Positions 1,860-52,800 of a DNA stretch of 64,000 nt are shown one piece after another. The notes under the pieces were generated by a model. The model had not been told where the DNA came from. It ran no database searches and saw only the letters and a list, made by a program, of their open reading frames with translations. Where the stretch lies: assembly GCA_028023455.1 (NCBI GenBank), contig JAQFVV010000005.1, positions 10,850,001-10,914,000 on the forward strand, given 5' to 3'. The DNA is from Epiperipatus broadwayi. Its lineage: Eukaryota; Animalia; Onychophora. Position 1 is the first letter of the stretch, and every line of letters begins with the position of its first letter. A program made the translations under genes and the position numbers.

Positions 1860-2199
1860 AGATAGTTGTAAATTGATAATCGGAAATATAACTTGGGTTT
1901 TTTTAAGAATACTTCAGTATAATTTTAACAAAAAGAGAAATATGTAGTTTTATTGTCATTATCATCCTAATTACTAATTGAGATCTGAATTTAGGTTCTC
2001 TGTGTTTAATAAAATATTTAATAACTTTTTAGTGCCCATACATAAATGATGAATAACATGCCATATGATTTAAAATATAAAATTTATGCATGTAATTGCA
2101 AGCTTTGTATTTCATAAAATAAAAAAATGATAGTATTGGTAGCCTGCATTTCCTAAAAAAAAAAGCGAAAGATGAATTGTATAATGATTAAACAAAGTA

Positions 2200-2550
2200 A
2201 TCTGTGAACTCTTAAATATGTCCACATACTTTAAATGCTGGTCTTTTAATCTGGTAATTTGATATTTTGCAATTGCTGTTGTTAATTTTGTCGAAAATTT
2301 GTCTTCATGAAAACTACAAAATTTGGCATTACAAATATCCAATCATTTCTATCCTCATATATATCTTTTCAAGGGCAATAGTCAGAATTGTACTTTTTAA
2401 GTCTCTTTGAGGCAATCTTTATAAGGAAAATGAGGTCTATCAATTCCACAAAAATTTTCTTCAAGTTTACCATAAAACTTTTTTTCAGGGTCTCTAAATC
2501 TTCATCCATTCCATATGCCTAACCAAATACATGTAGATAATAATTTATTC
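2200..2550 (-). mobile_element. RTE-clade LINE C-terminal remnant
   Basis: Minus-strand translation with frameshifts gives GH(V)xRM-like, PEKxFYGKLEE, RPHFPYKDCLKETLK-like and DRNDW motifs typical of RTE ORF ends. Confidence 0.5.
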
Positions 2551-4899
2551 ACTATCATAACACAACCATGTTAACAACATATTGACTGATTTCATAATTT
2601 TGCCATCATATTTTCAAAGTACTGAAAGATATGGTTAAATTAAATATTGTTATTAATTTTTGACATGTTAGTAAAGAGTTATCTATTTCCATACTATAAA
2701 TGAATTTGGCAGAATAACTACCCTATGTACAAGTTACTTGGTTTATTTAGTTAGATCCATATGAAAAATATCTTGTGTAATAATACTGCAGCATTCAAGT
2801 AAAAGATAATAGATATAGCATTTGTGACCAATATATTACTGTTTCATAGGTAAAGCCAAAAAATTATTTATCTTGTTAAAACAATTTAGTGTACAACTAG
2901 AAAATAATTATTATTTTTTATTGACTTGGATAACAATTTGTTAAAAGTTTATAAAAATAATATTAGCATTATTTAATCATATATCATGAAGATAACTTTC
3001 TTTTGTTCAACTATTCTACACTACTTTGAATTGGATGTAAATTTGAGTAGGATTGAATATATTTTGAACAAATCTATCATAATTGTATTTAGTCAAATAC
3101 CAGTTGTGGTTCTAAAATAGAATTTAAGGTGTATGACCTAAATAGTTATTGAAAATTTGTGATTTTTATAAGTTTTAACCAAATCCTTTGAAACATAGCA
3201 TAGTATGTATTTTAAAACTATTTAAAGTATGAATTCCAAAATATCAAAAATTAGTGAATACCATAGAAAGGAAGGCAAATTACATTTTAATCATGAATTA
3301 AAACTTTTGTTTTGATTGATAAAAGTCTGAAGCTAGGAGACAATTGTTATATTATGGTCTTGAAAAATGCCTCTTTGTATATTATTTTTAATTGCAAAAT
3401 TAATTCTAGATTGTGAGACAAAAATAAAATCCAAGTGCTTTTGTGCAAGATGATTGAAAGAAAAATATAGTTTTTTTTCATTTAAAATATTTTTCCCACA
3501 CGGAAATACATAAATATGATTGTCTCATAAAGTATGAATTACAAAACCTCATAAGTTTATATTTATGTAAAGCTTCTGTAACAAATATGGAAAACATAAT
3601 CTTGTTTAAATATTATTGCTTACATAATATGCACAGTTTCTATATGTATAATTGTGGATTAAGATTGGTATTTTTAATAAACTTTGTGCTTACATGTTTC
3701 TGATTACTGAAAACTTCATAAATGATATACTATATCTGATCTAATTGAATTATCTTCATATGGTTTATTGATGGTTATGTTTTCTTAAAATACCTTATTG
3801 GGTTTTCATGCTTCTCTGTGATATGAAATCAAGCATATTTCTCTTGTGTTTTTTTATCTATATTTTCTATATGATCCATTTTAAAGATCTTAATAGATTG
3901 CTTTTAATTTTCTCATAAATAACGAATCAGAAAGTTCAATAGTTGAAGTAACTGAACAAATGAAGGTTGTTCATATTGCTTACATGCCAAAAGTAAATTG
4001 TTGATTAATAAATTTCTTGCTGATAACTAAACTAACCAACTTGTCTATTATTTTTATTTTAATCACTAATTACATTAATAGATCTTATTATTGCTCTAGT
4101 TTTATTGGTATTTAATTATTTCTTTATTCATTTGATTGTTTTTTAGTTATTATTGTTTCTTCTATTTAATGTTTGTATTTTGAATGTACTCCCAATTTTT
4201 AATCTGATTTTTATTATATTTACCAGATGTACCTGGCCTTGGCCATCATTTTGATATGTGAATTTGACATCAAACAAAAGATTTGAATATTATATAAATA
4301 AATGTGAGAAATGTATATGGTCTGAAAGTCCATTTTTTGTAATTAAATTTTTTTTTTCCATTTTACAATTGCGAAATTTGACAGCAATTTTGTAATAGTT
4401 TTTTTAATTATTGCATATGGAAAGGTTGTTGTTTTTTAACATGGTTGCTTTAACAATTTTTTTTAATATTTAACATAAATTAAACAAAAGATTTTAATAT
4501 TACATTAATAACTGTGAGCAGTGTATTCAGTCTGAAAGGCAGTCATTACTCATATGTGAATTTGTCATTGTAAAGTACAACTATATATAGTACGATTATT
4601 TACTGGAAGACCCACTGAATAAAAAAAATGTCTTGAAAGGCTGTTGTTTTTATAATATTATTATTTACTGAATGTAAATATAGTGCTATAGCATCAATTT
4701 TTTTTTACCATCATGAAATATCATATTTCAAACCTGAATTTATGTACTGTAATCACATTTTCTCCATGATTTAAATACTATACCTTTGCAATTCAAAGCA
4801 TCTGTACTGATTTTTTTTCTGATCATTGTTTATTAATGGCAACTTTCTTCACTTAAACATAATAATAAGCAAACCAAAACTAAGTGTAAATGCAGTACT

Positions 4900-6685
4900 A
4901 CAGCTTCTATTTCTTTCCTTCACTAAATATCACATTTCACCCATGAATTAAATACTATTTTGGCTATTCTCTTTCCATCTATAAATTGCACTGTACCAAA
5001 TATTTTCATTTTGCTTTTTGCATCTCTCATATATTCAATCTTGACTATTCAATCTTGACTATCCCATTTCTCCTTGAGTTACCTCTTTTGCCATGTACAC
5101 ATCTGCGTCCAGTGCATGTCTTTGTACTTTTTCTAATTAATCTAATATCCCTTTACTAACACACAATGCATAATTACTATATGTTAACCCTGCTACTGCT
5201 ACTGCCACTCTGTTCCATTATAAATTAAAATTTGACTGCCACTCTGTTCCATATAATTCTTACTACATCATATTTATTATATGACAACACTTTTAATTTC
5301 TTTATCAATCTCTTTTCTTTGCTTTATTTATCAATTTTTTTTCTCATTTATTCAAGCAATTCTTCTGATTACTTAAGACTATTCACAAATAGTTATACCT
5401 ATTGACCACATTTAACTTTATAATCCCCCCAAAAAAATTCTTCTTCTCTTTTCCCAGCATTTATTATCATTATTTTTTATTTTTCTTCACTAAATTTGAT
5501 CTCAATCTCTTTTCCCACCCTTGCGTAAATCACAACTTCCATATCTTCCCAACTTTCTGTGCACAAGAAAATATCAGAAAATAATAGATGTGATGATATA
5601 TACACTCCCTTGCATCTATTAATGGTATCTTTACTTCTTTTCCTATTCTTTATTTTTCTCCATTTTTTTTCAAATATAACAACAAAATAGATGACATAGG
5701 ACATCCTTGCCTTAGTCTCATCCCATTTTTAACTCTAATTCTATATTTCATAATTGAAATATAGAATTATTTTCAGACAATCTCTTAATAAGATCGACTA
5801 AAACTCCATTCATTTCAAATTTACTGAACTTACCCATAATCTCTTTCTATTTACTCTATCATATGCCTTTTCTATGTCTATAAAAACCATATCTCTCTAT
5901 CTGTATTCCTATTCATATCTATAAGTTGTGTGACTACAACTAAACTCGAATATCTGTTCTAAAACCTTTTTGTATTTCTCCCACTATATTATTTTTGTCC
6001 ATCCATTTTGCCATTCTTTCATCCACCATATATACAAAAATTTTATATAACACCGACATTACTGCTACCAGTTTATAATTGTTTATCTATAGTTTTTACT
6101 CTTTGCTTTAAATAATAGCTTCACACATATTCTTTCAACTCTTGAGAGATCTGTCTTCTATACCATCTTATTAAAACATGATAGATAGATTTAATTTTAC
6201 CCTATTTCCCAAATTCATCACTTCTCTGTGCTGATTCATCTAAAATTCTTGTTTCCACTTTTCAACTTTTTCTCTGCGTCATTCAATTTATTTTCTGTAA
6301 AACTATTATTTCCATTACTAGGTGCTTTTATATTTATCACTCTCTCCTTCACATTTAGTCTCTCATTCTTCTCTAGATCTACACTCTTTCTTCTCACCAT
6401 TTAGTAATACTATTTCTCTCTCCCTACATTCCTTCTTTAAATATACTTCCAAATTTTTTTACTCCCATCTCTTCCACTTTTATTAATATTCTCCATTAAT
6501 TTAGTATTTAATTTTATTCTCTCTATATAATTATCTATTTTAGCCAACTGTTTTTATTTAAATAGTTTCCCAATTTAATATTAACATTTTGTTCACTTTC
6601 TTTATTTTTAATAGCACATTTATATTCTCTGCATGTTTTCTTTTTCTCTTTTATACTTTTACTAATTCTCATTTTTCTATTACTT
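4900..6685 (-). mobile_element. Decayed LINE ORF2 reverse transcriptase region
   Basis: Minus-strand motifs NNYKLVAVMSVLYKIF (~6050-6090), FIDIEKAYDRVNRERLW (~5840-5890), LRQGCPMS (~5695-5720) and HLLFSD (~5575-5590). Many stops and frameshifts. Confidence 0.85.
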
Positions 6686-26577: not shown

Positions 26578-28338
26578 TCACATAAATTGTATAAGAATTT
26601 CTATAGTATAATCAGTGAAATGACTAGCTTCATGCTTATCAATTATACATTTCTCAATGTCTTTATAATCACACAAACAACACATGAATACATCAGTACT
26701 ACAATTATTCTCCACGTTCTTTACATTCTTCTTAATCTTCAGAGAAGATACATCAAAAGTACACATTTTATGGTTTACCAAAATACTTTGAGAAATTAGT
26801 TTGCTATTAAGTTTTATTTTTGTATGCAATTTTTCATGTTGGGTTAATCTATTTTTTAAAGTAGTTTTATAATCACATAAACTGCATTGCAATATTTCTT
26901 CTCTTTTATGTTTTATTCTATGTAAATTTAAATTCCATTCTGTAGTTGTCTTGTAATTACATAAATCGCAATGGAAAGTTTTTTCATGTGCATGTTTTCG
27001 TTCATGCAACTTTAAGTTTTGTTTAACAACAGTTTTATAATCACAGAAGTTACAATGAAAAGAATATTTCCCCATATGGATAGCTTCATGCAATTTCAAA
27101 CTCTGTTTTAATGCTGCCTTATATTCACAAAATCGACAGTGAAAAGGTTTTGTTCCTGTATGTCTTACTTCATGCAATTTGAGATATTCTTTTCTAGCAC
27201 TCTTATAATCACATAAGTTGCAGTGGAATGGCTTTTCACCAGTATGTGTTTTACTATGTAGTAATAAATGTTTTTTGTTACCACTACTATAATCACACAA
27301 GGGACAATGGAAGGGCTTTTCTCCTGTATGGATTCTTTCATGTTCTATTAAATTCTGTTTTGTAGCAGACCTTAAATCACAGAATCTACATTGGAAAGGT
27401 TTATCACCTGTATGTGTTCTTTCGTGCACTTTTAAACTGTGTTTTACAGAACACTTAAAATCACACCATTTACAATGGAATGGTTTTTCTCCTGTATGTG
27501 TTCTTAGATGGATTTTTAAGCCTCCTTTTATAGCAGACTTGTAATCACAGAATTTGCAGTGGAATGGGTGTTCTCCTGTATGTCTTTTTTCATGCAAGCC
27601 TAAGTTCCTTTTTACACCAGTTTTATAATCACATGAACTACAGTGGTAAGGTTTTTCTCCTGTGTGTTTTCTTTCATGTTCAACTAATTGCCCTTTATAA
27701 GTGGCATTATAATTACAAAAATTGCAATTGAAAAGATGTTCTCCTGTATGTGTTCTTTCATGCACTTTTAAGTTTTGCTTGGTAAAACATTCATAATCAC
27801 AAAAGCTACAATGGAAAGGTTTTTCACCTGTATGCCTTCTTTTATGTTCTATTAATCGACTTTTTTGGGTGGTATTATAAATACAAAAATTGCAGTGAAA
27901 AACTTTTTCTCCCGTATGTGTCCTTTTATGGATTTTTATGGTTTCTTTTGCAGTAGATTCATAATTGCACAATTTGCAATGGAAAGGTTTTTCTCTAGTA
28001 TGTTCTTTTTCATGCAACTTTAAATTTCTCTTGGCAGCAGTTTCATAATCACACAACATACAGTGGAAAGGCTTTTCTCCTGTGTGTTTTCTTTCATGTT
28101 CAATTAATCGTAATTTCCTTGTGGTATTATAATTACAAAAGTTGCAATGGAAAACTTTTTCTCCTGTATGTGTTCTTTGGTGCATTTTTAAACTTTGTTT
28201 ACCTAAGGTCTCATAATCACACAAGCTGCAATGGAAAGGTATTTTCTGTATATGTTTTGTTTCATGTTTTATTAAATTTGTTTTAGCAGTAGTAGTGTAT
28301 TTACAACAGTTGCATTGGAACATTTCTTCTTCAGTCAT
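26578..28338 (-). CDS. C2H2 multi-zinc-finger protein (586 aa; 18 tandem fingers plus 1 C-terminal finger), likely transcription factor
   Basis: Intact ORF of repeated F-x-C-x2-C-D/N-Y-x7-L-x2-H-x3-H units with TGEKPF linkers. No KRAB, ZAD or BTB domain recognisable in the ORF. Confidence 0.93.
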   Translation of the reverse strand: MTEEEMFQCNCCKYTTTAKTNLIKHETKHIQKIPFHCSLCDYETLGKQSLKMHQRTHTGEKVFHCNFCNYNTTRKLRLIEHERKHTGEKPFHCMLCDYETAAKRNLKLHEKEHTREKPFHCKLCNYESTAKETIKIHKRTHTGEKVFHCNFCIYNTTQKSRLIEHKRRHTGEKPFHCSFCDYECFTKQNLKVHERTHTGEHLFNCNFCNYNATYKGQLVEHERKHTGEKPYHCSSCDYKTGVKRNLGLHEKRHTGEHPFHCKFCDYKSAIKGGLKIHLRTHTGEKPFHCKWCDFKCSVKHSLKVHERTHTGDKPFQCRFCDLRSATKQNLIEHERIHTGEKPFHCPLCDYSSGNKKHLLLHSKTHTGEKPFHCNLCDYKSARKEYLKLHEVRHTGTKPFHCRFCEYKAALKQSLKLHEAIHMGKYSFHCNFCDYKTVVKQNLKLHERKHAHEKTFHCDLCNYKTTTEWNLNLHRIKHKREEILQCSLCDYKTTLKNRLTQHEKLHTKIKLNSKLISQSILVNHKMCTFDVSSLKIKKNVKNVENNCSTDVFMCCLCDYKDIEKCIIDKHEASHFTDYTIEILIQFM

Positions 28339-31804: not shown

Positions 31805-31861
31805 ATGATCTGGATAACTGATGAGTGCTGATTCAACATGAAATACGTATATGGAGATCAT
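31805..31861 (+). ncRNA. Degenerate minimal type-I hammerhead ribozyme (third family)
   Basis: atgatct-ggataa-CTGATGA(31818-24)-gtgct gattc aacat-GAAA(31840-43)-tacgta-T-A-tgg-agatcat. Helix III palindrome ATACGTAT; distal helix I atgatct/agatcat. Confidence 0.55.
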
Positions 31862-38330: not shown

Positions 38331-40414
38331 ATGCAGCTAATCATTCAATAATGCTTATTACTTGAAGTGATGATTATTTCGTTTTTTATTTTAAATGCAT
38401 ATAATTGATTTCTATATATTAAGAATGTATATAGATTTATATTTGAAATGATTTGACATGAAAATTCTTATGTGAAAGTTCTTATTTGAACAATGATGCT
38501 TTATTGTGTATTTTCAATTTTATAAATTACAAAATTTTCTATAAAAACAAAAAATGTTAATCTGTATGAATTAATCTTTCAATATATATAATTTAAATTA
38601 ACTAATCAAGATTAATTTAACTAAATTATATGAACACAGACAGAGTTTAAAAGATTTTAGATGTATCCTTATATATATATTGATTTGTATATTTGCCATT
38701 CTCAAATTAAAAAAAATCACGGAATTACAATTATAATGCATATCAAGTTACCTGATAAAAGACTTTTTCAGCAAATAATATAATACAGCTTATTATTGAT
38801 AGTTTACCACACATAAACTAAATAACCATTAACCTAGTATTATGAAGCTAAATAATAAACATTAATGAAATTCTTATCCTTACAATAAAAAAATAAAATA
38901 TTCATTAACTTTATCTCATTAGACAGTAAAATGAATATCAGTTTACTATTTGTAAAAGTATTTTAGAATGATGAATAAAGCTATGTTGACTATTGAGCTC
39001 ATAACAAGAAAAGGTGAAATCTTGATTAAATATAGAAACTCCTATATAACTTCAATTTTTTAAAAAAAATTATCCAGTCTACTAGTATCCAATATTAGCT
39101 ATTTATGGTAGAGTAAGTCAATGACTTAATTAAAATAAGCCTTACTAACAGATAAAAAGTTTAGTGAAGAAGAGGGACATAAGAGGTCATTGCCTTAGAT
39201 TGATAATTTGTATAAATTATTTTTTATTTTCTTTCTCAAAGAATTGTTCAACTAAACAATCTGTAAATTAAAAACAAATTATATTGCAGAAGAAAAAATA
39301 AAATTAACAAAATGATAGCTGGCTAGGTTATTATAAAAAAATCAGTACCCATATCTATTTTTACTTGGCACCTTTCAAAACCTATATATTTATTTTTTGC
39401 TACTTTATGTGATGACATCTTAATTATTTAGGTATTCCAGATAGTTACTACCATTTATAAAATGGTATAATATAATGCCTAATTTTTATGTTACCCATAT
39501 TTTTTGTATCAGTTATCCTAAATAAATAAAAGTATCATAAAAAATAAATAGAAATAAATTCTTTCTAGTTCTCATTGCATATAGAATATGCACACAGAAT
39601 TATATTTGTCTTAAAAATATTCTACTATCTATTTTGCAGCTGGGAATCAAAGATTGCAAATATAAGATTATTATTATTAAATAACTGTAAATCAAGATTT
39701 TCAACAAATAAGTTTAAAAAAATTTTATTATCAATAAATAGCAATCTATATCTATGATATATTAAAATTCATAGAAACAATAACTAAGTAATTCATCAAA
39801 TTACAAACAAGTTAACTTACAATATATTAGTGCAGAAATACAACTTTATAAAAAGAGTGACCTGAAAGCCACATCCATAGTAAATATAGTATATATACAT
39901 AAAATGTTTTGAAGAGATCTATCATTTTTTAGATTTAGTAAACACATTAAACAGTAGACAAGATGTGATAATTATTTCATTTCAATGAGAACTATGCAGT
40001 AGTTCATCTTCATTTACTAGAGTATCTATATCAATCTTAATGTTTATAGTTGTCAATTGCAATACATTTGAAAGATTTGTTTTTGGTTTTTTTTAATCAC
40101 TTTCTATGTTGAAAAAGTGTTTACAAAGACATGCTCTCAAACACTGAGCACATCTTGAATCCAATGTTCCTCAATTTTGTATCTCTTGGTAGAAATTTTT
40201 TAAAAAATCTTTTTCATTATTGCAAGTATAAAATGGATCTGCTTGTCAATCACATATTTTCAGTTGAAGATCAGATTTTTCAATTTTGACAATCTAGAGT
40301 TGATAAACAGAGCAAAACTCTCCATACAGTATTGCCACCTGTGCTAAACAGAGTAATCAATGGATGCCAGAAGGCTTGTGCATAAAATCCCTATCTAATG
40401 CCTACTCATCCAAT

Positions 40415-40458
40415 ATCCCCAGACTAGTTTCTGGCTTGTGGCCTTAGTCAGTGAGGAG
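40415..40458 (-). ncRNA. Hammerhead ribozyme copy with G8-to-U core change (probably inactive)
   Basis: Minus strand reads ctcctca-CTGACTA-aggccacaagcca-GAAA-ctag-TC-tggggat. All helices pair, but the core is mutated. Confidence 0.7.
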
Positions 40459-40868
40459 CTTTGGATCTGAGAGTACTGCATCTAGATCTTAGGATCTAAT
40501 GCAACCCTCTAGCAACCACCTTTTATCTCTACTTAACTACAAAACTATGAGAATGAAATTGAAAACAAAAAATATTTTCAATCTAAGCTCAATAGCTTAT
40601 ATAGTCATATGGGTCTGAACTCAGTTCAGCACCCATACATTTTGGTGTCTTTGGCTCTTTTACAACCATAGCCACCACTATCCTATTAGGCAGGATTGGT
40701 GTTAAACCATTAAGCATCACATGATCATATTTCCTATACTAGCACATTAATTGTTGATAAACAGAGCAAAACTCTCCATACAGTATTGCCACCTGTGCTA
40801 AACAGAGTAATCAATAGATGCCAGAAGGCTTGCGCATAAAATTCCTATCTAATGCCTACTCATCCAAT

Positions 40869-40912
40869 ATCTCCAGACTAGTTTCTGGCTTGTGGCCTTC
40901 GTCAGTGAGGAG
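40869..40912 (-). ncRNA. Minimal type-I hammerhead ribozyme (intact core)
   Basis: Minus strand reads ctcctca-CTGACGA-a-ggc cacaa gcc-a-GAAA-ctag-TC-tggagat. Predicted cleavage falls between 40876 and 40875. Confidence 0.75.
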
Positions 40913-41071
40913 CTTTAGGAAATGTGATCATGTGAATCTAGAGTTGAATAAATATTAAAATACCTTTTTCAATTTCTTAAATTATTAAGTTGATGCTTAA
41001 AATCCTCAATGATTTTTTAATATATTGAGATGGTTGTGTCTCATAGCATACAACCATATAATAGTATGTAT

Positions 41072-43084: not shown

Positions 43085-44420
<1,336 letters not shown>

Positions 44421-49330: not shown

Positions 49331-49565
49331 TTCAAATATTCTATTACATTAATTAATAAAAATAAAATATGTATTATTTTACAAATATTTGTATTAATAG
49401 TAATAGTAACAAGTCAGATGTCACATGACTTATATATAGCTTGCACTTATAAATATGTAAAATTAAGAGCGTGCTAATAGCTCTAAACAAGCTTTTTTTT
49501 TTTATTTATGATAAATGCTACTACAAGAGAAGGCATTCAAATCATTTTTATTTTAAATGGTCCCC

Positions 49566-49608
49566 ATCCCCAGACCGGTTTCGACCTATGGGTCTCTTCA
49601 GTGAGGAG
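49566..49608 (-). ncRNA. Minimal type-I hammerhead ribozyme (canonical)
   Basis: Exact reverse complement of the motif at 49845-49887. Confidence 0.88.
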
Positions 49609-49844
49609 TTGGGACATTAGATCTAAAAAACCAACTCAAGCAAAGCATTTATCTAAAAGATAATTGTTAGAAGAAGATCTGAAACTTTTAGACATCTACA
49701 TGTCTTTAAAGTCAGCTCTCCAACTGAAAAAATCATATGGGACTGGACTTAATTCAGATGTCTAAATGTTTCAGATCTTCTTCTAACAATTATCTTTTAG
49801 ATAAATGCTTTGCTTGAGTTGGTTTTTTAGATCTAATGTCCCAA

Positions 49845-49887
49845 CTCCTCACTGAAGAGACCCATAGGTCGAAACCGGTCTGGGGAT
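49845..49887 (+). ncRNA. Minimal type-I hammerhead ribozyme (canonical)
   Basis: ctcctca-CTGAAGA(49852-58)-GACC cata GGTC-GAAA(49871-74)-ccgg-TC-tggggat. G10.1-C11.1 present, helix I 6 bp, helix III palindrome ACCGGT, GUC cleavage after 49880. Confidence 0.9.
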
Positions 49888-52800
49888 GGGGACCATTTAA
49901 AATAAAAATGATTTGAATGCCTTCTCTTGTAGTAGCATTTATCATAAATAAAAAAAAAAGCTTGTTTAGAGCTATTAGCACGCTCTTAATTTTAAATATT
50001 TGTATTGTAAATTTTAAAATAAATGATTTTACTTTATTTATTTTTAAGTTCTCATATTTAATATTTTATTACTGATAATAATAAATTTACATAAGTATTT
50101 TGTGGTTGTATCCTTTTACATTTAAAATTTATTCAAGAATTATAAACATTCATGTACACACCCACAAATATTTAAATATTGTTTAAACTTTCTATCCTTA
50201 TTAAGAGTAATTTTAATCTTATATGTACACCAACAAAGTAATTCCTATAACTAATAATAATTTATTTTTATTATTGTTAGTATTATGTATTGTTCTTTTA
50301 AAACTAATTATATATACATGACTTTTTTAATAACTAAATATAAACTGCGATAAAAAAAATTTGATACACATATTTGAAAACATTGTATTTCTAAAATATA
50401 TATGAGAAGATATCTTGGATTAGTTTAATTATTTGCCTTATAAAGTAATATTATCAATAATATTAATATTATTTTAATATTATTTGCAGTAATAAGAGCA
50501 TTAATAAATAGTAGTTACAATATTGATATGCCAATAAAAAATTTTAAATTACGATTATTATTGCCAATTCATATATTAAATTTCATTACAAGATATATAT
50601 ATTTTAACAGGACAGTCTAACTGTGGTATGCACGAAGAGTAAAAAGAGTGTATCTCTATTGTCTACCTTCTTATATTAATTTCATACTTGAGAGAATAGA
50701 AAGATCTTAAACAACTGCTAATTCTACTCTTAACTTGTGACCTATGTATTGTAGTTTACTCCCATTAATCTGGGTTTTAAACTCAGGGAGATGTGTATGA
50801 TCCTCAGACTCAGGGAATGTTTGTATCACCAAGTTCATCATATCTGTAACATGAGTAAATGCCTGTTAATAGGAGTGGGTATAGAAGATTATATACATGC
50901 AAGTAAAGGTCATTATATGTGTATGAGGATATGGCTTAGCAGAATTCAGCCACAGAAAAATAAACCAAGAAACATGTTTTAACATTTTAATAAATGTAAT
51001 AACCATATATAAATGGATTGATATTTGGAAAATAAAGTTTATAACAAGATTACAGGATCTCATTTGGACACCTGTGGTTATACTTCATTTATGTTTGGTT
51101 TATACTAATGTTTCCCATCCTGATCCCTGAAGAACAGCTTCTACATGCCTTGGTTAACATGAACGATCTGAAGGTTTAATAGACCCCCTTGTTATATATA
51201 ATGTATATGCATCAAAAGAGAATTACAAGTTTAACATAAAAAAAAGTATAAGAGATATTAATAATTAACATGAATTTTGAAATAAACAATCAACAAAAGT
51301 GTGTAATGTGTACATATATAAATATGTAATTGACATATATCTTAGATAACATCTTACCTTATCTTTCATTCACAATGATCAATTACTTTATAATCAAGAT
51401 TATATCTTATAAATTTTATCTACCTGTAGTAATGACCTTATCTTTATTATGAATTTTTTAAATTTATATTAAGTTTTTCATCCCTACATTAAAATAAAGA
51501 AAATAAATTATTATATTTAGCATATGAATAACTAATTATCAATGATGTCAACTTTATAGAGAGATTTCATGGTTCAGCTGGAGAATGTTCTCATAGCTTA
51601 TCTTTATAAACCATAGTAATTCCTGTATACATAGCTGAGAATTTGAATATCTGAAGGAAGCCTTTGAACTAAAGTTTTGAAGCGAGGAGTGGGAAAAAAA
51701 ATCAGTCCAGGTGTAGAGAGTTAAAACAATTCCATATTGGCTATGACAATTTCTAGTTCTGTGGATGATGATTTCTCTTCCATGACAGTTTCCTTTTGCA
51801 ATTAGCAACACATTAGTTTTGTCAATAATATATAAAATCTTTTTGGTTGAAATTGGTTGGAATAACATCAATATTTACCTTCCGAAATTTATAGCTATCT
51901 GAATGCTGACTGCTTAAAAGTTCTAACATCAAATCATACCCCACATGATCCGAAACATAAACAGTGGGTGATTACTTCTAGGAAATGATTATATTGCTTC
52001 TAAAAGAAGCCTAATTTTCTTCACTCAAGAGAGTTTAGGGAGAAAAGAAGATAAAAAGGCAACAAGTCAGACAACAACAACACTTTATACATGGTAGTGT
52101 TGTCATAAAATGTTCCAGAAATATCTGCTTCTGAAAGGGTAAAAGCAGATAGTAGCTTTTGTGTACCGATCACACTAATCATTGTTTTAATAAGCCTTCA
52201 GGTCTTTTCTTATTAAGTTGTATTAATCATCAATTATATTGTATTCTAAATATATATGAACTGTTGACTACATTTGTATATTGTATTTAATTATTGATTA
52301 TCAAAAATTAGGAATTATATCTTTGGCATATTCACCACTTATGTTTAGAAATAAAATTGTTTTTAGGAATCTGAATTATACTGATACTCTGTGAATGTAA
52401 ATATATATAAAAATTAATAATAGCAATACAACTGTCTCTGTACTTTTTATTAGTTTTTTATTGAGGCTTATGTGATAAAAGCTGATTTGCTAAAGATTAA
52501 TTGCTAATTAAAGCTGAAACAATACAATTAGCTCCAAAAATCCATGGCTAACATATTCCTGTAAAGGATTATAACCCAAATGGCAGACAATCACATTTTC
52601 AATAGACACTGAATCAAAATGATATTTTGCTTATTGACTTCGCAAATAGATTTAGTGAAATAGTGTTGTGATGCTATTCTGGCCAATACATTTTCAAAGT
52701 ATGTAAGTAGTTTAACAAAATAATGTTGAAATCACAGAGCCACATAAGGAAATTTGTTATAAATGATGTGCAGAATGACCACTACACACATTACATCAAA

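Follow-up and report, generated by a model that had tools for sequence, protein, structure and literature searches.

What kind of element gives rise to a head-to-head palindrome with a hammerhead ribozyme (HHR) in each arm, and how are its two arms made? Such a palindrome lies in a 64,000-nt stretch of the genome of the onychophoran Epiperipatus broadwayi (GCA_028023455.1, contig JAQFVV010000005.1, positions 10,850,001–10,914,000), here called the window, whose own coordinates are used throughout. An original prediction, made from the sequence, placed the palindrome at 49458–49994 and regarded it as a young insertion derived from a Penelope-like element (PLE) or a retrozyme. We find that the palindrome is not a unit of its own but part of a single insertion from a ~424-nt tandem-repeat family, and that the arrangement of this family across the genome bears on how both arms were made.

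One insertion with two mirror-image arms

The insertion is 598 bp long (49396–49993) and represents one copy of a very abundant non-coding HHR repeat in two mirror-image arms. The predicted feature is real but slightly larger than stated, with the target-site duplications (TSDs) lying outside the arms. The features, with monomer positions numbered from the HHR cleavage site, are as follows.

49383–49395, no strand: left TSD copy, 13 bp, AAATATTTGTATT, directly adjoining the element
49396–49458, minus strand: one-sided 63-nt tail, monomer 180 down to 118, present in the minus-strand arm only and ending outward at the long (L) start site
49396–49759, minus strand: inverted arm, 364 nt, monomer 180 to 1 and then 427 to 241 (BLAST with the monomer)
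49560–49615, minus strand: minus-arm HHR motif, bounded on both sides by distal helix I and scored at 31.0 bits by Rfam Hammerhead_1 (49567–49607)
C complementary to 49573, minus strand: predicted cleavage 3' of this base in the minus-arm HHR
49698–49755, minus strand: non-palindromic 58-nt centre, within the minus-strand arm
49756–49759, no strand: inversion junction, a 4-nt microhomology (AGAT) common to both arms
49756–49993, plus strand: plus-strand arm, 238 nt, monomer 303 to 427 and then 1 to 116; its end is the short (S) start site
49838–49893, plus strand: plus-arm HHR motif, with cleavage predicted 3' of C49880 and a score of 31.0 bits from Rfam Hammerhead_1 (49846–49886)
49994–50006, no strand: right TSD copy, 13 bp, perfect, immediately outside the plus arm

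The near-identical arms of ~240 bp are borne out by alignment: 49459–49697, reverse-complemented, differs from 49756–49993 by 1 mismatch and 1 indel in 238 nt, the indel being a run of A10 versus A11. A repeat search and direct reading delimit an inner inverted repeat of 204 nt (49494–49697 and 49756–49959) with a single mismatch (49686 versus 49767), and the repeat search adds an outer one at 96% (49448–49502 and 49950–50004). The arms are 0.4% apart and the nearest other family copies 0.8%, in keeping with the youth ascribed to the insertion. The 58-nt centre was considered as a separate spacer and rejected, as it is the ordinary continuation of the minus-strand arm. Contigs of the family whose loose ends lie at 49759 and 49395 run on into the next tandem unit.

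The original prediction also named inverted pseudo-LTR (pLTR) arrangements as typical of PLEs. The link to PLEs is supported, as described below, but a pair of inverted pLTRs is not: the arms are an inverted 5'-truncated arm and a sense arm from one event, and do not flank a lost ORF.

The hammerhead motifs and their repeat family

Every detail predicted for the HHR cores was matched when the sequence was read. Both arms contain CUGAAGA, GAAA, the A/U pair and GUC (C17 is 49880 in the plus arm), with a helix II of GACC/GGUC and a CAUA loop. Proximal helix I has 6 bp (49846–49851 with 49881–49886, including one G·U) and is followed by an internal loop (AAC/UG) and the distal gtccc/gggac helix (49838–49842 with 49889–49893). 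The topology is type I: the chain enters and leaves via helix I, there are three helices and G10.1–C11.1 closes helix II. Helix III consists of only A15.1–U16.1 around a palindromic CCGG in each arm, which agrees with the minimal type-I form that had been proposed, and it is absent from the minimum free energy fold of the single motif, which points to instability in cis. The 29-nt core CTGAAGAGACCCATAGGTCGAAACCGGTC lies at 49852–49880 on the plus strand and 49573–49601 on the minus strand, where 0 occurrences are expected (100 shuffles).

Rfam Hammerhead_1 (RF00163), the model named for checking the prediction, detects both HHRs at 31.0 bits, slightly short of the gathering score, which is 34 (E = 1.4e-5 over 851 nt and 1.1e-3 over the whole window). 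Rfam at gathering thresholds gives no match in the window, and the HHRs surface only under E-value thresholds. The shortfall is due to helix III, in which the model sees only a 2-nt loop; in the cmscan alignment the core columns C3–A9, G12–A14, A15.1–U16.1 and H17 all match.

Metazoan type-I HHRs whose helix III has 1–2 bp and a palindromic loop work in dimeric form, and pairs of HHRs on opposite strands occur 100–700 bp apart (PMC4209133). The HHRs of the window correspond to this dimer-dependent metazoan form (PMC4209133, PMC7229834). They resemble the satellite HHRs of newt and axolotl (HHR_Amex1 type; PMC7229834, PMC4209133) in having a helix I of 6 bp, a helix II of 4 bp and a helix III of one base pair capped by a palindromic tetraloop, whereas the unit sequence is unrelated and the host animal different. 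With such a helix III, efficient cleavage would be expected only when the HHRs of adjacent units join in a double hammerhead. RNAcofold of the two HHR segments cannot represent a loop–loop double hammerhead, and its result was set aside.

Counted by the exact 29-nt core, the family has ~5,000 copies (4,953 occurrences in the 5.6-Gb genome, 0 for the reversed control), which supplies the genome copy number called for by the prediction. A related species carries the family as well. Its tandem monomers are 419–427 nt long (~424 nt) with one HHR per unit, and two loci hold arrays of at least 12 units with an HHR in every unit. Units differ by 0.7% within an insertion versus 2.6% between insertions, and one array has an alternating A/B pattern of units. 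The longest stop-free stretch of the unit is 64 aa, its GC content is 32.6% and the fold predicted for its RNA as a circle is highly structured (−109 kcal/mol, z −5.6).

In a conservation profile based on the majority base and used solely to measure variation, the HHR exceeds the remainder of the unit in conservation only modestly (it ranks 21st among the 427 windows of the profile); the whole unit is conserved and the HHR not singled out. The copies are very alike (median minor-allele fraction 1.3%), too much so to give covariation evidence. A related family at 40291–40947 (~60%) has A-U to G-C and C-G to G-C changes in helix II and CCGG to CUAG in helix III, together with A·A at 10.1/11.1 and, in one copy, G8 to U.

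Animal retrozymes are tandem HHR repeats of 150–450 bp (PMC7229834, Cervera and de la Pena 2020). The family shares with the animal non-LTR retrozymes of that study a short AT-rich non-coding tandem unit with one type-I HHR each, thousands of copies, TSDs of more than 4 bp and a structured unit RNA, predicted in our case. Those retrozymes have linear and circular unit-length RNAs, whereas the window family is known here from genomic copies. By these features the family belongs with the animal non-LTR retrozymes, a known class of which the window copy is a clean example, and the class is not new. However, inverted arms, a one-sided tail and fixed tips, all present in the family, do not appear in PMC7229834 (the word 'inverted' occurs 0 times in its text).

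Architecture of the family and alternative origins

The arrangement of the window copy was compared with that of 45 fetched insertions, 35 two-armed and 10 one-armed. The arms of the two-armed insertions diverge from the centre in 35/35 cases and converge in 0, and junctions between neighbouring copies in the first 100 genomic places are divergent (−+) 14 times and convergent (+−) 0 times. Outer tips fall at two fixed monomer positions 63 nt apart, ~117–123 (S) and ~180 (L), within clusters of ~112–130 and ~168–190, respectively. Tip pairs of the two-armed insertions (n = 35) comprise 24 L+S, 1 S+S and 0 L+L, with 7.3 L+L expected, and the tip is L in 9/10 one-armed insertions. The usual L+S pair accounts for the 63-nt one-sided tail. 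Arm length ranges from 0.1 to 11 units, with some insertions of up to 11–13 units inside one TSD pair. The inversion junction differs in position between loci, with overlaps of mostly 1–6 nt. TSDs are 11–14 nt long in 8/8 non-microsatellite loci, compared with a maximum of 7 nt among 56 mismatched flank pairs used as a control, and the target is (TA)n in 7/15 loci. We also considered the tips as the mark of a site-specific target or of a longer composite element, and rejected this, given that the flanks of 15 loci are mutually unrelated.

Foldback elements look broadly like tandem-unit inverted arms with TSDs. Under a DNA-level origin the palindrome would be either a DNA transposon of the foldback or MITE type, its long inverted arms composed of tandem subrepeats, or a piece of satellite that replication template switching or recombination had inverted, and the long inverted repeats built from tandem units, the locus-dependent arm length and the presence of TSDs all fit. 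However, the two tips are not mutual inverted repeats, one arm has 63 extra nt, and identical terminal sequences on both tips of most copies, which would support such an origin, are not seen. TSD length varies from 11 to 14, the junction is at a different position at every locus and one-armed 5'-truncated copies have the same L tip. The 35:0 orientation, with HHR-sense 3' ends outward, is predicted by target-primed cDNA synthesis and not by recombination. We therefore consider a DNA-level origin very unlikely.

Could the palindrome instead be false, produced in assembling a highly repeated family? The summed contig depth of the family reaches 10^4–10^5 in DNA runs, depth dips in the junction bin, and none of the contigs listed bridges 49756–49759 with 31 nt on each side. 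Despite this, a perfect 13-bp TSD lies immediately outside both arms, the same architecture is found in 35/35 two-armed loci on many different contigs, and the window copy obeys the L+S tip rule. DNA contigs from this organism extend over the unique flanks, and one of them (49335–49420) crosses the left boundary without a difference. An assembly artefact is exceedingly unlikely on this evidence. Two independent insertions of the family that came to lie head to head, by chance or by nesting, would be favoured by thousands of copies, a preference for AT-rich and (TA)n targets, and closest unrelated copies only 0.8% from the arms. Yet the arms are 0.4% apart, a single TSD pair encloses them with no TSD at the inner junction, and neither the 14:0 and 35:0 orientation bias nor the L+S coupling can arise independently, which leaves this explanation with next to no probability.

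A transcript of 49396–49993 is predicted to fold into a near-perfect ~240-bp hairpin at −426.5 kcal/mol, and the dsRNA anticipated for any transcript through the locus is thus reproduced by the fold model. The palindrome could be an exapted hairpin-RNA locus kept for family-silencing small RNAs, siRNA or miRNA-like, made from its transcript, a role compatible with the insertion origin. Apart from the predicted hairpin, this idea can draw on matches to plant MIR models (E 1e-7 to 1e-8), but these are generic hairpin matches far below the gathering scores (52 bits versus cut-offs of 140–211) and were rejected. The element, though not its flanks, is present in two runs taken to be RNA; these are short contigs, possibly DNA, in which RNA ends are not visible, and they give no sign that this locus is transcribed. 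The youth of the arms leaves no basis for judging retention, and an integration mechanism explains the same architecture at every locus. Exaptation is highly unlikely in our view.

Proposed Penelope-like integration and its significance

In PLE insertions, a 5'-truncated copy lies alongside in inverted orientation, just one end carries a tail, and microsatellites are favoured as targets (PMC8557442, Craig et al. 2021). A PLE protein nicks and extends both DNA strands, and reverse transcription starts at two adjacent internal sites, the interval between which is the PLE tail (PMC11167929, Frangieh et al. 2024). Retrozymes are related to PLE pLTRs (10.64898/2026.07.22.740005). This published insertion signature fits the family, whose arms always diverge, whose tail is one-sided, whose tips fall at two fixed positions and whose targets lean towards (TA)n. 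Further points in common with PLEs (PMC8557442, PMC11167929) are partial tandems, the position of the inverted 5'-truncated copy on the 5' side, variable TSDs, two discrete start sites of reverse transcription and extension of both strands; the tail is 63 nt in the family versus 30–40 bp reported for PLEs. Together with the retrozyme unit layout and the 13-bp TSD, this supports the proposed PLE-derived or retrozyme identity.

Unlike a PLE, the element has no reverse transcriptase (RT)/GIY-YIG ORF and can therefore only be a non-autonomous passenger. The genome holds 10,244 GIY-YIG candidates at first look, with open frames up to 901 aa. One 561-aa ORF has a C-terminal GIY-YIG domain (Pfam on the C-terminal piece), and its nearest Atlas clusters carry RVT_1 and GIY-YIG; with two PLE ORFs submitted as whole proteins, Pfam gave no match, and RVT_1 was not recovered. 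Two PLE ORFs gave no tblastn match to the window or the 45 retrozyme loci, and no PLE ORF was found adjoining any fetched retrozyme locus. Among >10,000 candidate GIY-YIG loci, the 30 compared yielded no meaningful match, and thus no autonomous PLE with this HHR, the 3' region or a homologous pLTR. The nearest PLE protein clusters are commonest in Mollusca, an observation that serves as a lead only.

We consider it likely that the palindrome is the product of a single retrotransposition of a non-autonomous non-LTR retrozyme, integrated by a PLE reverse transcriptase/GIY-YIG endonuclease. Tandem transcripts of a source array would let neighbouring HHRs pair via the palindromic ACCGGU into an active double hammerhead, releasing ~424-nt monomers that tRNA ligase could circularise. 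The RNA template would be multimeric or circular, given that other insertions hold up to 11–13 units between one TSD pair. After a staggered cut, both 3' ends of the target would prime cDNA synthesis on HHR-sense RNA, one cDNA starting at an obligatory site near monomer 180 and the other near 117–123, and the two cDNAs would be joined at 49756–49759. A snap-back origin, from a self-primed hairpin, predicts equal tips and near-equal junction coordinates, whereas the family shows unequal tips (L+S) and variable junction offsets; two-sided priming is preferred over it, although not proven.

L1 'twin priming', which Ostertag and Kazazian are said to have described in 2001, reportedly uses a second primer that anneals at variable internal sites, with inversions in a minority of insertions. 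The family resembles it in having one TSD-bounded insertion with an inverted 5' part, sense 3' ends outward and junction microhomology. In contrast to L1 twin priming, the second start site of the family is fixed (~117–123) and inversion is the rule; the template, unlike that of L1, is a repeat unit, hence the palindromic arms.

A wider reading, which we hold tentatively and rate slightly short of probable, is that the family is a natural genome-wide record of animal retrozyme RNA being integrated by PLE machinery via two-sided target-primed reverse transcription. The obligatory start at ~monomer 180, and a further fixed one (~117–123) lying 63 nt upstream of it, would then each serve one DNA strand, and the multi-unit arms in one TSD pair, the near-identical units and the A/B alternation in one array would stem from circular RNA, monomeric or dimeric, that was reverse-transcribed by a rolling-circle process.

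The window copy has one sense HHR per transcript direction and is therefore most likely dead-on-arrival; the locus alone is probably an inert, ordinary repeat copy. For annotation, palindromes of this type are to be expected in the genome, and should not be taken for miRNA-like hairpin genes or assembly errors. The family is useful as data, with thousands of young copies, sharp tips, a one-sided tail and always-divergent arms. In the retrozyme papers compared, the link between retrozymes and PLEs consists of HHR similarity and pLTR phylogeny only, and the questions of start sites and of this link have so far rested on one in vitro study and phylogeny. If two-sided PLE integration is true, it constitutes structural evidence for the link. 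The family could reveal how reverse transcriptases of the Penelope-like type initiate on the two DNA strands, and could test whether animal retrozymes depend on PLEs and on RNA templates that are circular or multimeric.

A single insertion with two inverted arms

A repeat search of the window returned inverted-repeat arms at 49494-49697 and 49756-49959, separated by 58 nt, and outer inverted arms at 49448-49502 and 49950-50004. With positions in the repeat unit (the monomer) numbered from the cleavage site of the hammerhead ribozyme motif (HHR), the 58-nt 'centre' is a mere continuation of the minus arm because of the monomer coordinates of the two arms.

Features of the window copy and of a related family in the same window
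49396-49759, minus strand: minus-strand arm, monomer 180 down through 1 and 427 to 241
49396-49458: one-sided tail of the window copy
49756-49759: inversion junction, 4 nt (AGAT) common to both arms
49756-49993, plus strand: plus-strand arm, monomer 303 through 427 to 116
49838-49842 with 49889-49893: HHR distal helix, outside the internal loop
49846-49851 with 49881-49886: HHR proximal helix I, internal loop beyond
49880, plus arm: HHR C17
40291-40947, minus strand: second repeat family, ~60% related, 454-bp period, 164-nt direct repeat at 97%

When 49459-49697 was reverse-complemented and aligned with 49756-49993, the element-only arms showed two differences in 238 nt, a substitution (49686 versus 49767) and an indel within a run of A, a result that bears out the original prediction of a real inverted repeat. 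DNA contigs from the sequencing runs are present over both unique flanks, with one crossing the left boundary; no contig bridging the inversion junction was found among those listed.

Both arms constitute one insertion bounded by a target-site duplication (TSD), not two. They are directly abutted by a perfect 13-bp direct repeat, AAATATTTGTATT (49383-49395 and 49994-50006), and an abutting duplication of 11–14 nt is present in 8/8 fetched two-armed loci with non-microsatellite flanks, against a longest common string of 7 nt in 56 mismatched left/right flank pairs. Seven further loci are located within (TA)n tracts. The insertion site is a zinc-finger gene region, with ORFs composed of numerous C2H2 zinc fingers at 26578-28338 (minus strand, 586 aa; Pfam zf-H2C2_2, E = 1.7e-94) and 43410-43868 (minus strand, 152 aa; E = 6.7e-28).

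A transcript through the window copy is predicted to form a hairpin of ~240 bp (-426.5 kcal/mol), in agreement with what had been expected of any through-transcript. As also expected, each transcript direction holds only one sense HHR, and the window copy is probably inert.

The hammerhead motif and its repeat family

Each arm carries CTGAAGAGACCCATAGGTCGAAACCGGTC (49852-49880, plus strand; 49573-49601, minus strand), which is expected not at all in shuffled sequence. Read from the sequence, the motif has the core CUGAAGA, helix II GACC/GGUC closed by CAUA, the GAAA element and a helix III of A15.1 and U16.1 flanking CCGG. Together with the cleavage site, helix I and the distal helix, this anatomy matches the predicted one base by base. 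In the Hammerhead_1 search proposed as a check, both arms matched the Rfam model over its full length at 31.0 bits; the shortfall of 3 bits from the curated cut-off is due to helix III, which is shorter than the model requires. Metazoan type-I HHRs that have a 6-bp helix I, a 4-bp helix II and a 1–2-bp helix III with a palindromic loop, and that act as dimers, have been described (Cervera and de la Pena, PMC4209133), as have dual HHRs on opposite strands, 100–700 bp apart (PMC4209133). The axolotl HHR_Amex1, with a single-pair helix III and a palindromic tetraloop, shows efficient cleavage only when the construct is a dimer (PMC7229834).

The only comparative signal for the HHR comes from the family at 40291-40947, whose HHR-like motifs have helix I and the core in common with the window element's family. 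The changes in helices II and III are all pair-preserving (A-U to G-C and C-G to G-C in helix II, CCGG to CUAG in helix III). This second family further differs in an A.A mismatch at 10.1/11.1, the base of helix II, and, in one copy, in a core mutation, G8 to U; Rfam at E ≤ 1 did not detect its motifs. A relaxed scan returned a loose HHR-like string at 31818 (plus strand), with CTGATGA, a 3-bp helix II containing a G.U, GAA and palindromic ATACGTAT; helix II is poor, as is proximal helix I, the string is absent from the Rfam matches, and it is probably due to chance.

With one arm as query, many copies at 85–97% identity were retrieved from the 5.6-Gb genome to which the window belongs; when mapped, they lie head to tail and repeat every ~424 bp (units of 419–427 nt when a tandem array is cut at successive HHR cleavage sites). 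The copy count suggested in the original prediction gave 4,953 genomic sites for the exact 29-nt core (2,563 forward and 2,390 reverse; reversed control pattern, 0). The unit has a GC content of 32.6% (window, ~26%), its stop-free stretches do not exceed 64 codons, and a strong structure is predicted for it as a circle (-109 kcal/mol, z = -5.6 versus shuffles). This layout is that of animal non-LTR retrozymes, which are AT-rich tandem repeats of 150–450 bp with one type-I HHR each (PMC7229834).

Units differ on average by 0.7% within an insertion versus 2.6% between insertions, and within the family the HHR is only slightly more conserved than the remaining unit. The most variable HHR positions are two CpGs (monomer 417-418 and 423-424; window 49870-49871, 49876-49877 and their mirror sites), with C to T and G to A changes in 4–9% of copies, which fits methylation-driven decay of repeats. 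Inside one two-armed insertion (locus L031, G000:C1243:1-10000, ~2196-6015), two unit variants alternate with a higher-order period of ~849 bp, units i and i+2 differing by 0–1 gap and units i and i+1 by 4–7 gaps; the pattern would fit either a template in dimer form or a source array with higher-order structure. Of four runs guessed to be RNA, the two that were examined show the element without flanks, in short contigs that could be DNA, and no run holding the stretch is recorded as RNA. A second, presumably related organism (runs X7 and X5) carries the family, and one of its contigs, 109 nt long, matches window 49620-49728 exactly; the family is thus either common to more than one species or a recent exchange between them.

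Divergent architecture and a proposed route of integration

For the first 100 sites of the HHR core in the genome, neighbours closer than 2 kb were oriented (+,+) in 15 cases, (-,-) in 8, (-,+) in 14 and (+,-) in none. The fetched loci contain 45 complete insertions, 35 two-armed and 10 one-armed, and every two-armed insertion (35/35) reads (-)n(+)m with the HHR-sense 3' ends outward. The inversion junction lies at a different unit position at every locus, usually with an overlap of 1–6 nt, and the outer tips cluster at monomer ~112–130 (class S) and ~168–190 (class L). Tip pairs in the two-armed insertions were L+S in 24, L with an atypical tip in 8, S+S in 1 and L+L in 0, where independent tips would give 7.3 L+L; an L tip is also present in 9/10 one-armed, 5'-truncated insertions. 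There is thus exactly one L tip in almost all insertions. From that tip it is usually another 57–63 nt inward to the start of the second, inverted arm, and so a one-sided tail is left. The family thus has its sense strand outward on both sides, fixed tips and a variable junction.

Insertions of Penelope-like elements (PLEs) are 5'-truncated partial tandems (Craig et al., PMC8557442), and reverse transcription begins at two adjacent internal RNA sites, the interval between them being the tail (PMC11167929). In a 2026 preprint, co-occurrence and phylogeny are used to trace animal retrozymes to PLE pLTRs (10.64898/2026.07.22.740005); tails and inverted arms are not among its topics. The retrozyme unit layout, TSD, tips, tail and divergent arms support the reading of a young PLE-derived or retrozyme insertion, and the original observation as a whole is confirmed.

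The genome is rich in PLE machinery: a first look with a GIY-YIG profile gave 10,244 candidates across it, the longest open frame among them being 901 aa. One 561-aa ORF has its GIY-YIG domain at the C-terminus, and its nearest Atlas clusters, which combine RVT_1 with GIY-YIG, occur most often in Mollusca; this taxonomic hint is no more than a lead. Many GIY-YIG matches lie in close -/+ pairs (in the window's own genome, for example, C6351:2388234(-)/2388918(+), C12559:1182506(-)/1183311(+) and C6470:489409(-)/489953(+)), and coding PLEs therefore appear to have the divergent inverted architecture of the retrozyme family. An autonomous partner PLE was not found among 30 GIY-YIG loci examined or beside the fetched retrozyme loci.

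In the mechanism we propose, HHRs of adjacent units in source arrays would pair via ACCGGU and release unit-length RNA. A PLE endonuclease would make a staggered target cut, both 3' ends would prime cDNA synthesis on HHR-sense RNA, one at ~180 and the other at ~117–123, and the two cDNAs would be united through microhomology. The template may be a multimeric transcript or else a circle that was copied repeatedly, because the arms can contain many near-identical units. The window locus itself is ordinary; as a natural data set on PLE integration, the family is a good one.
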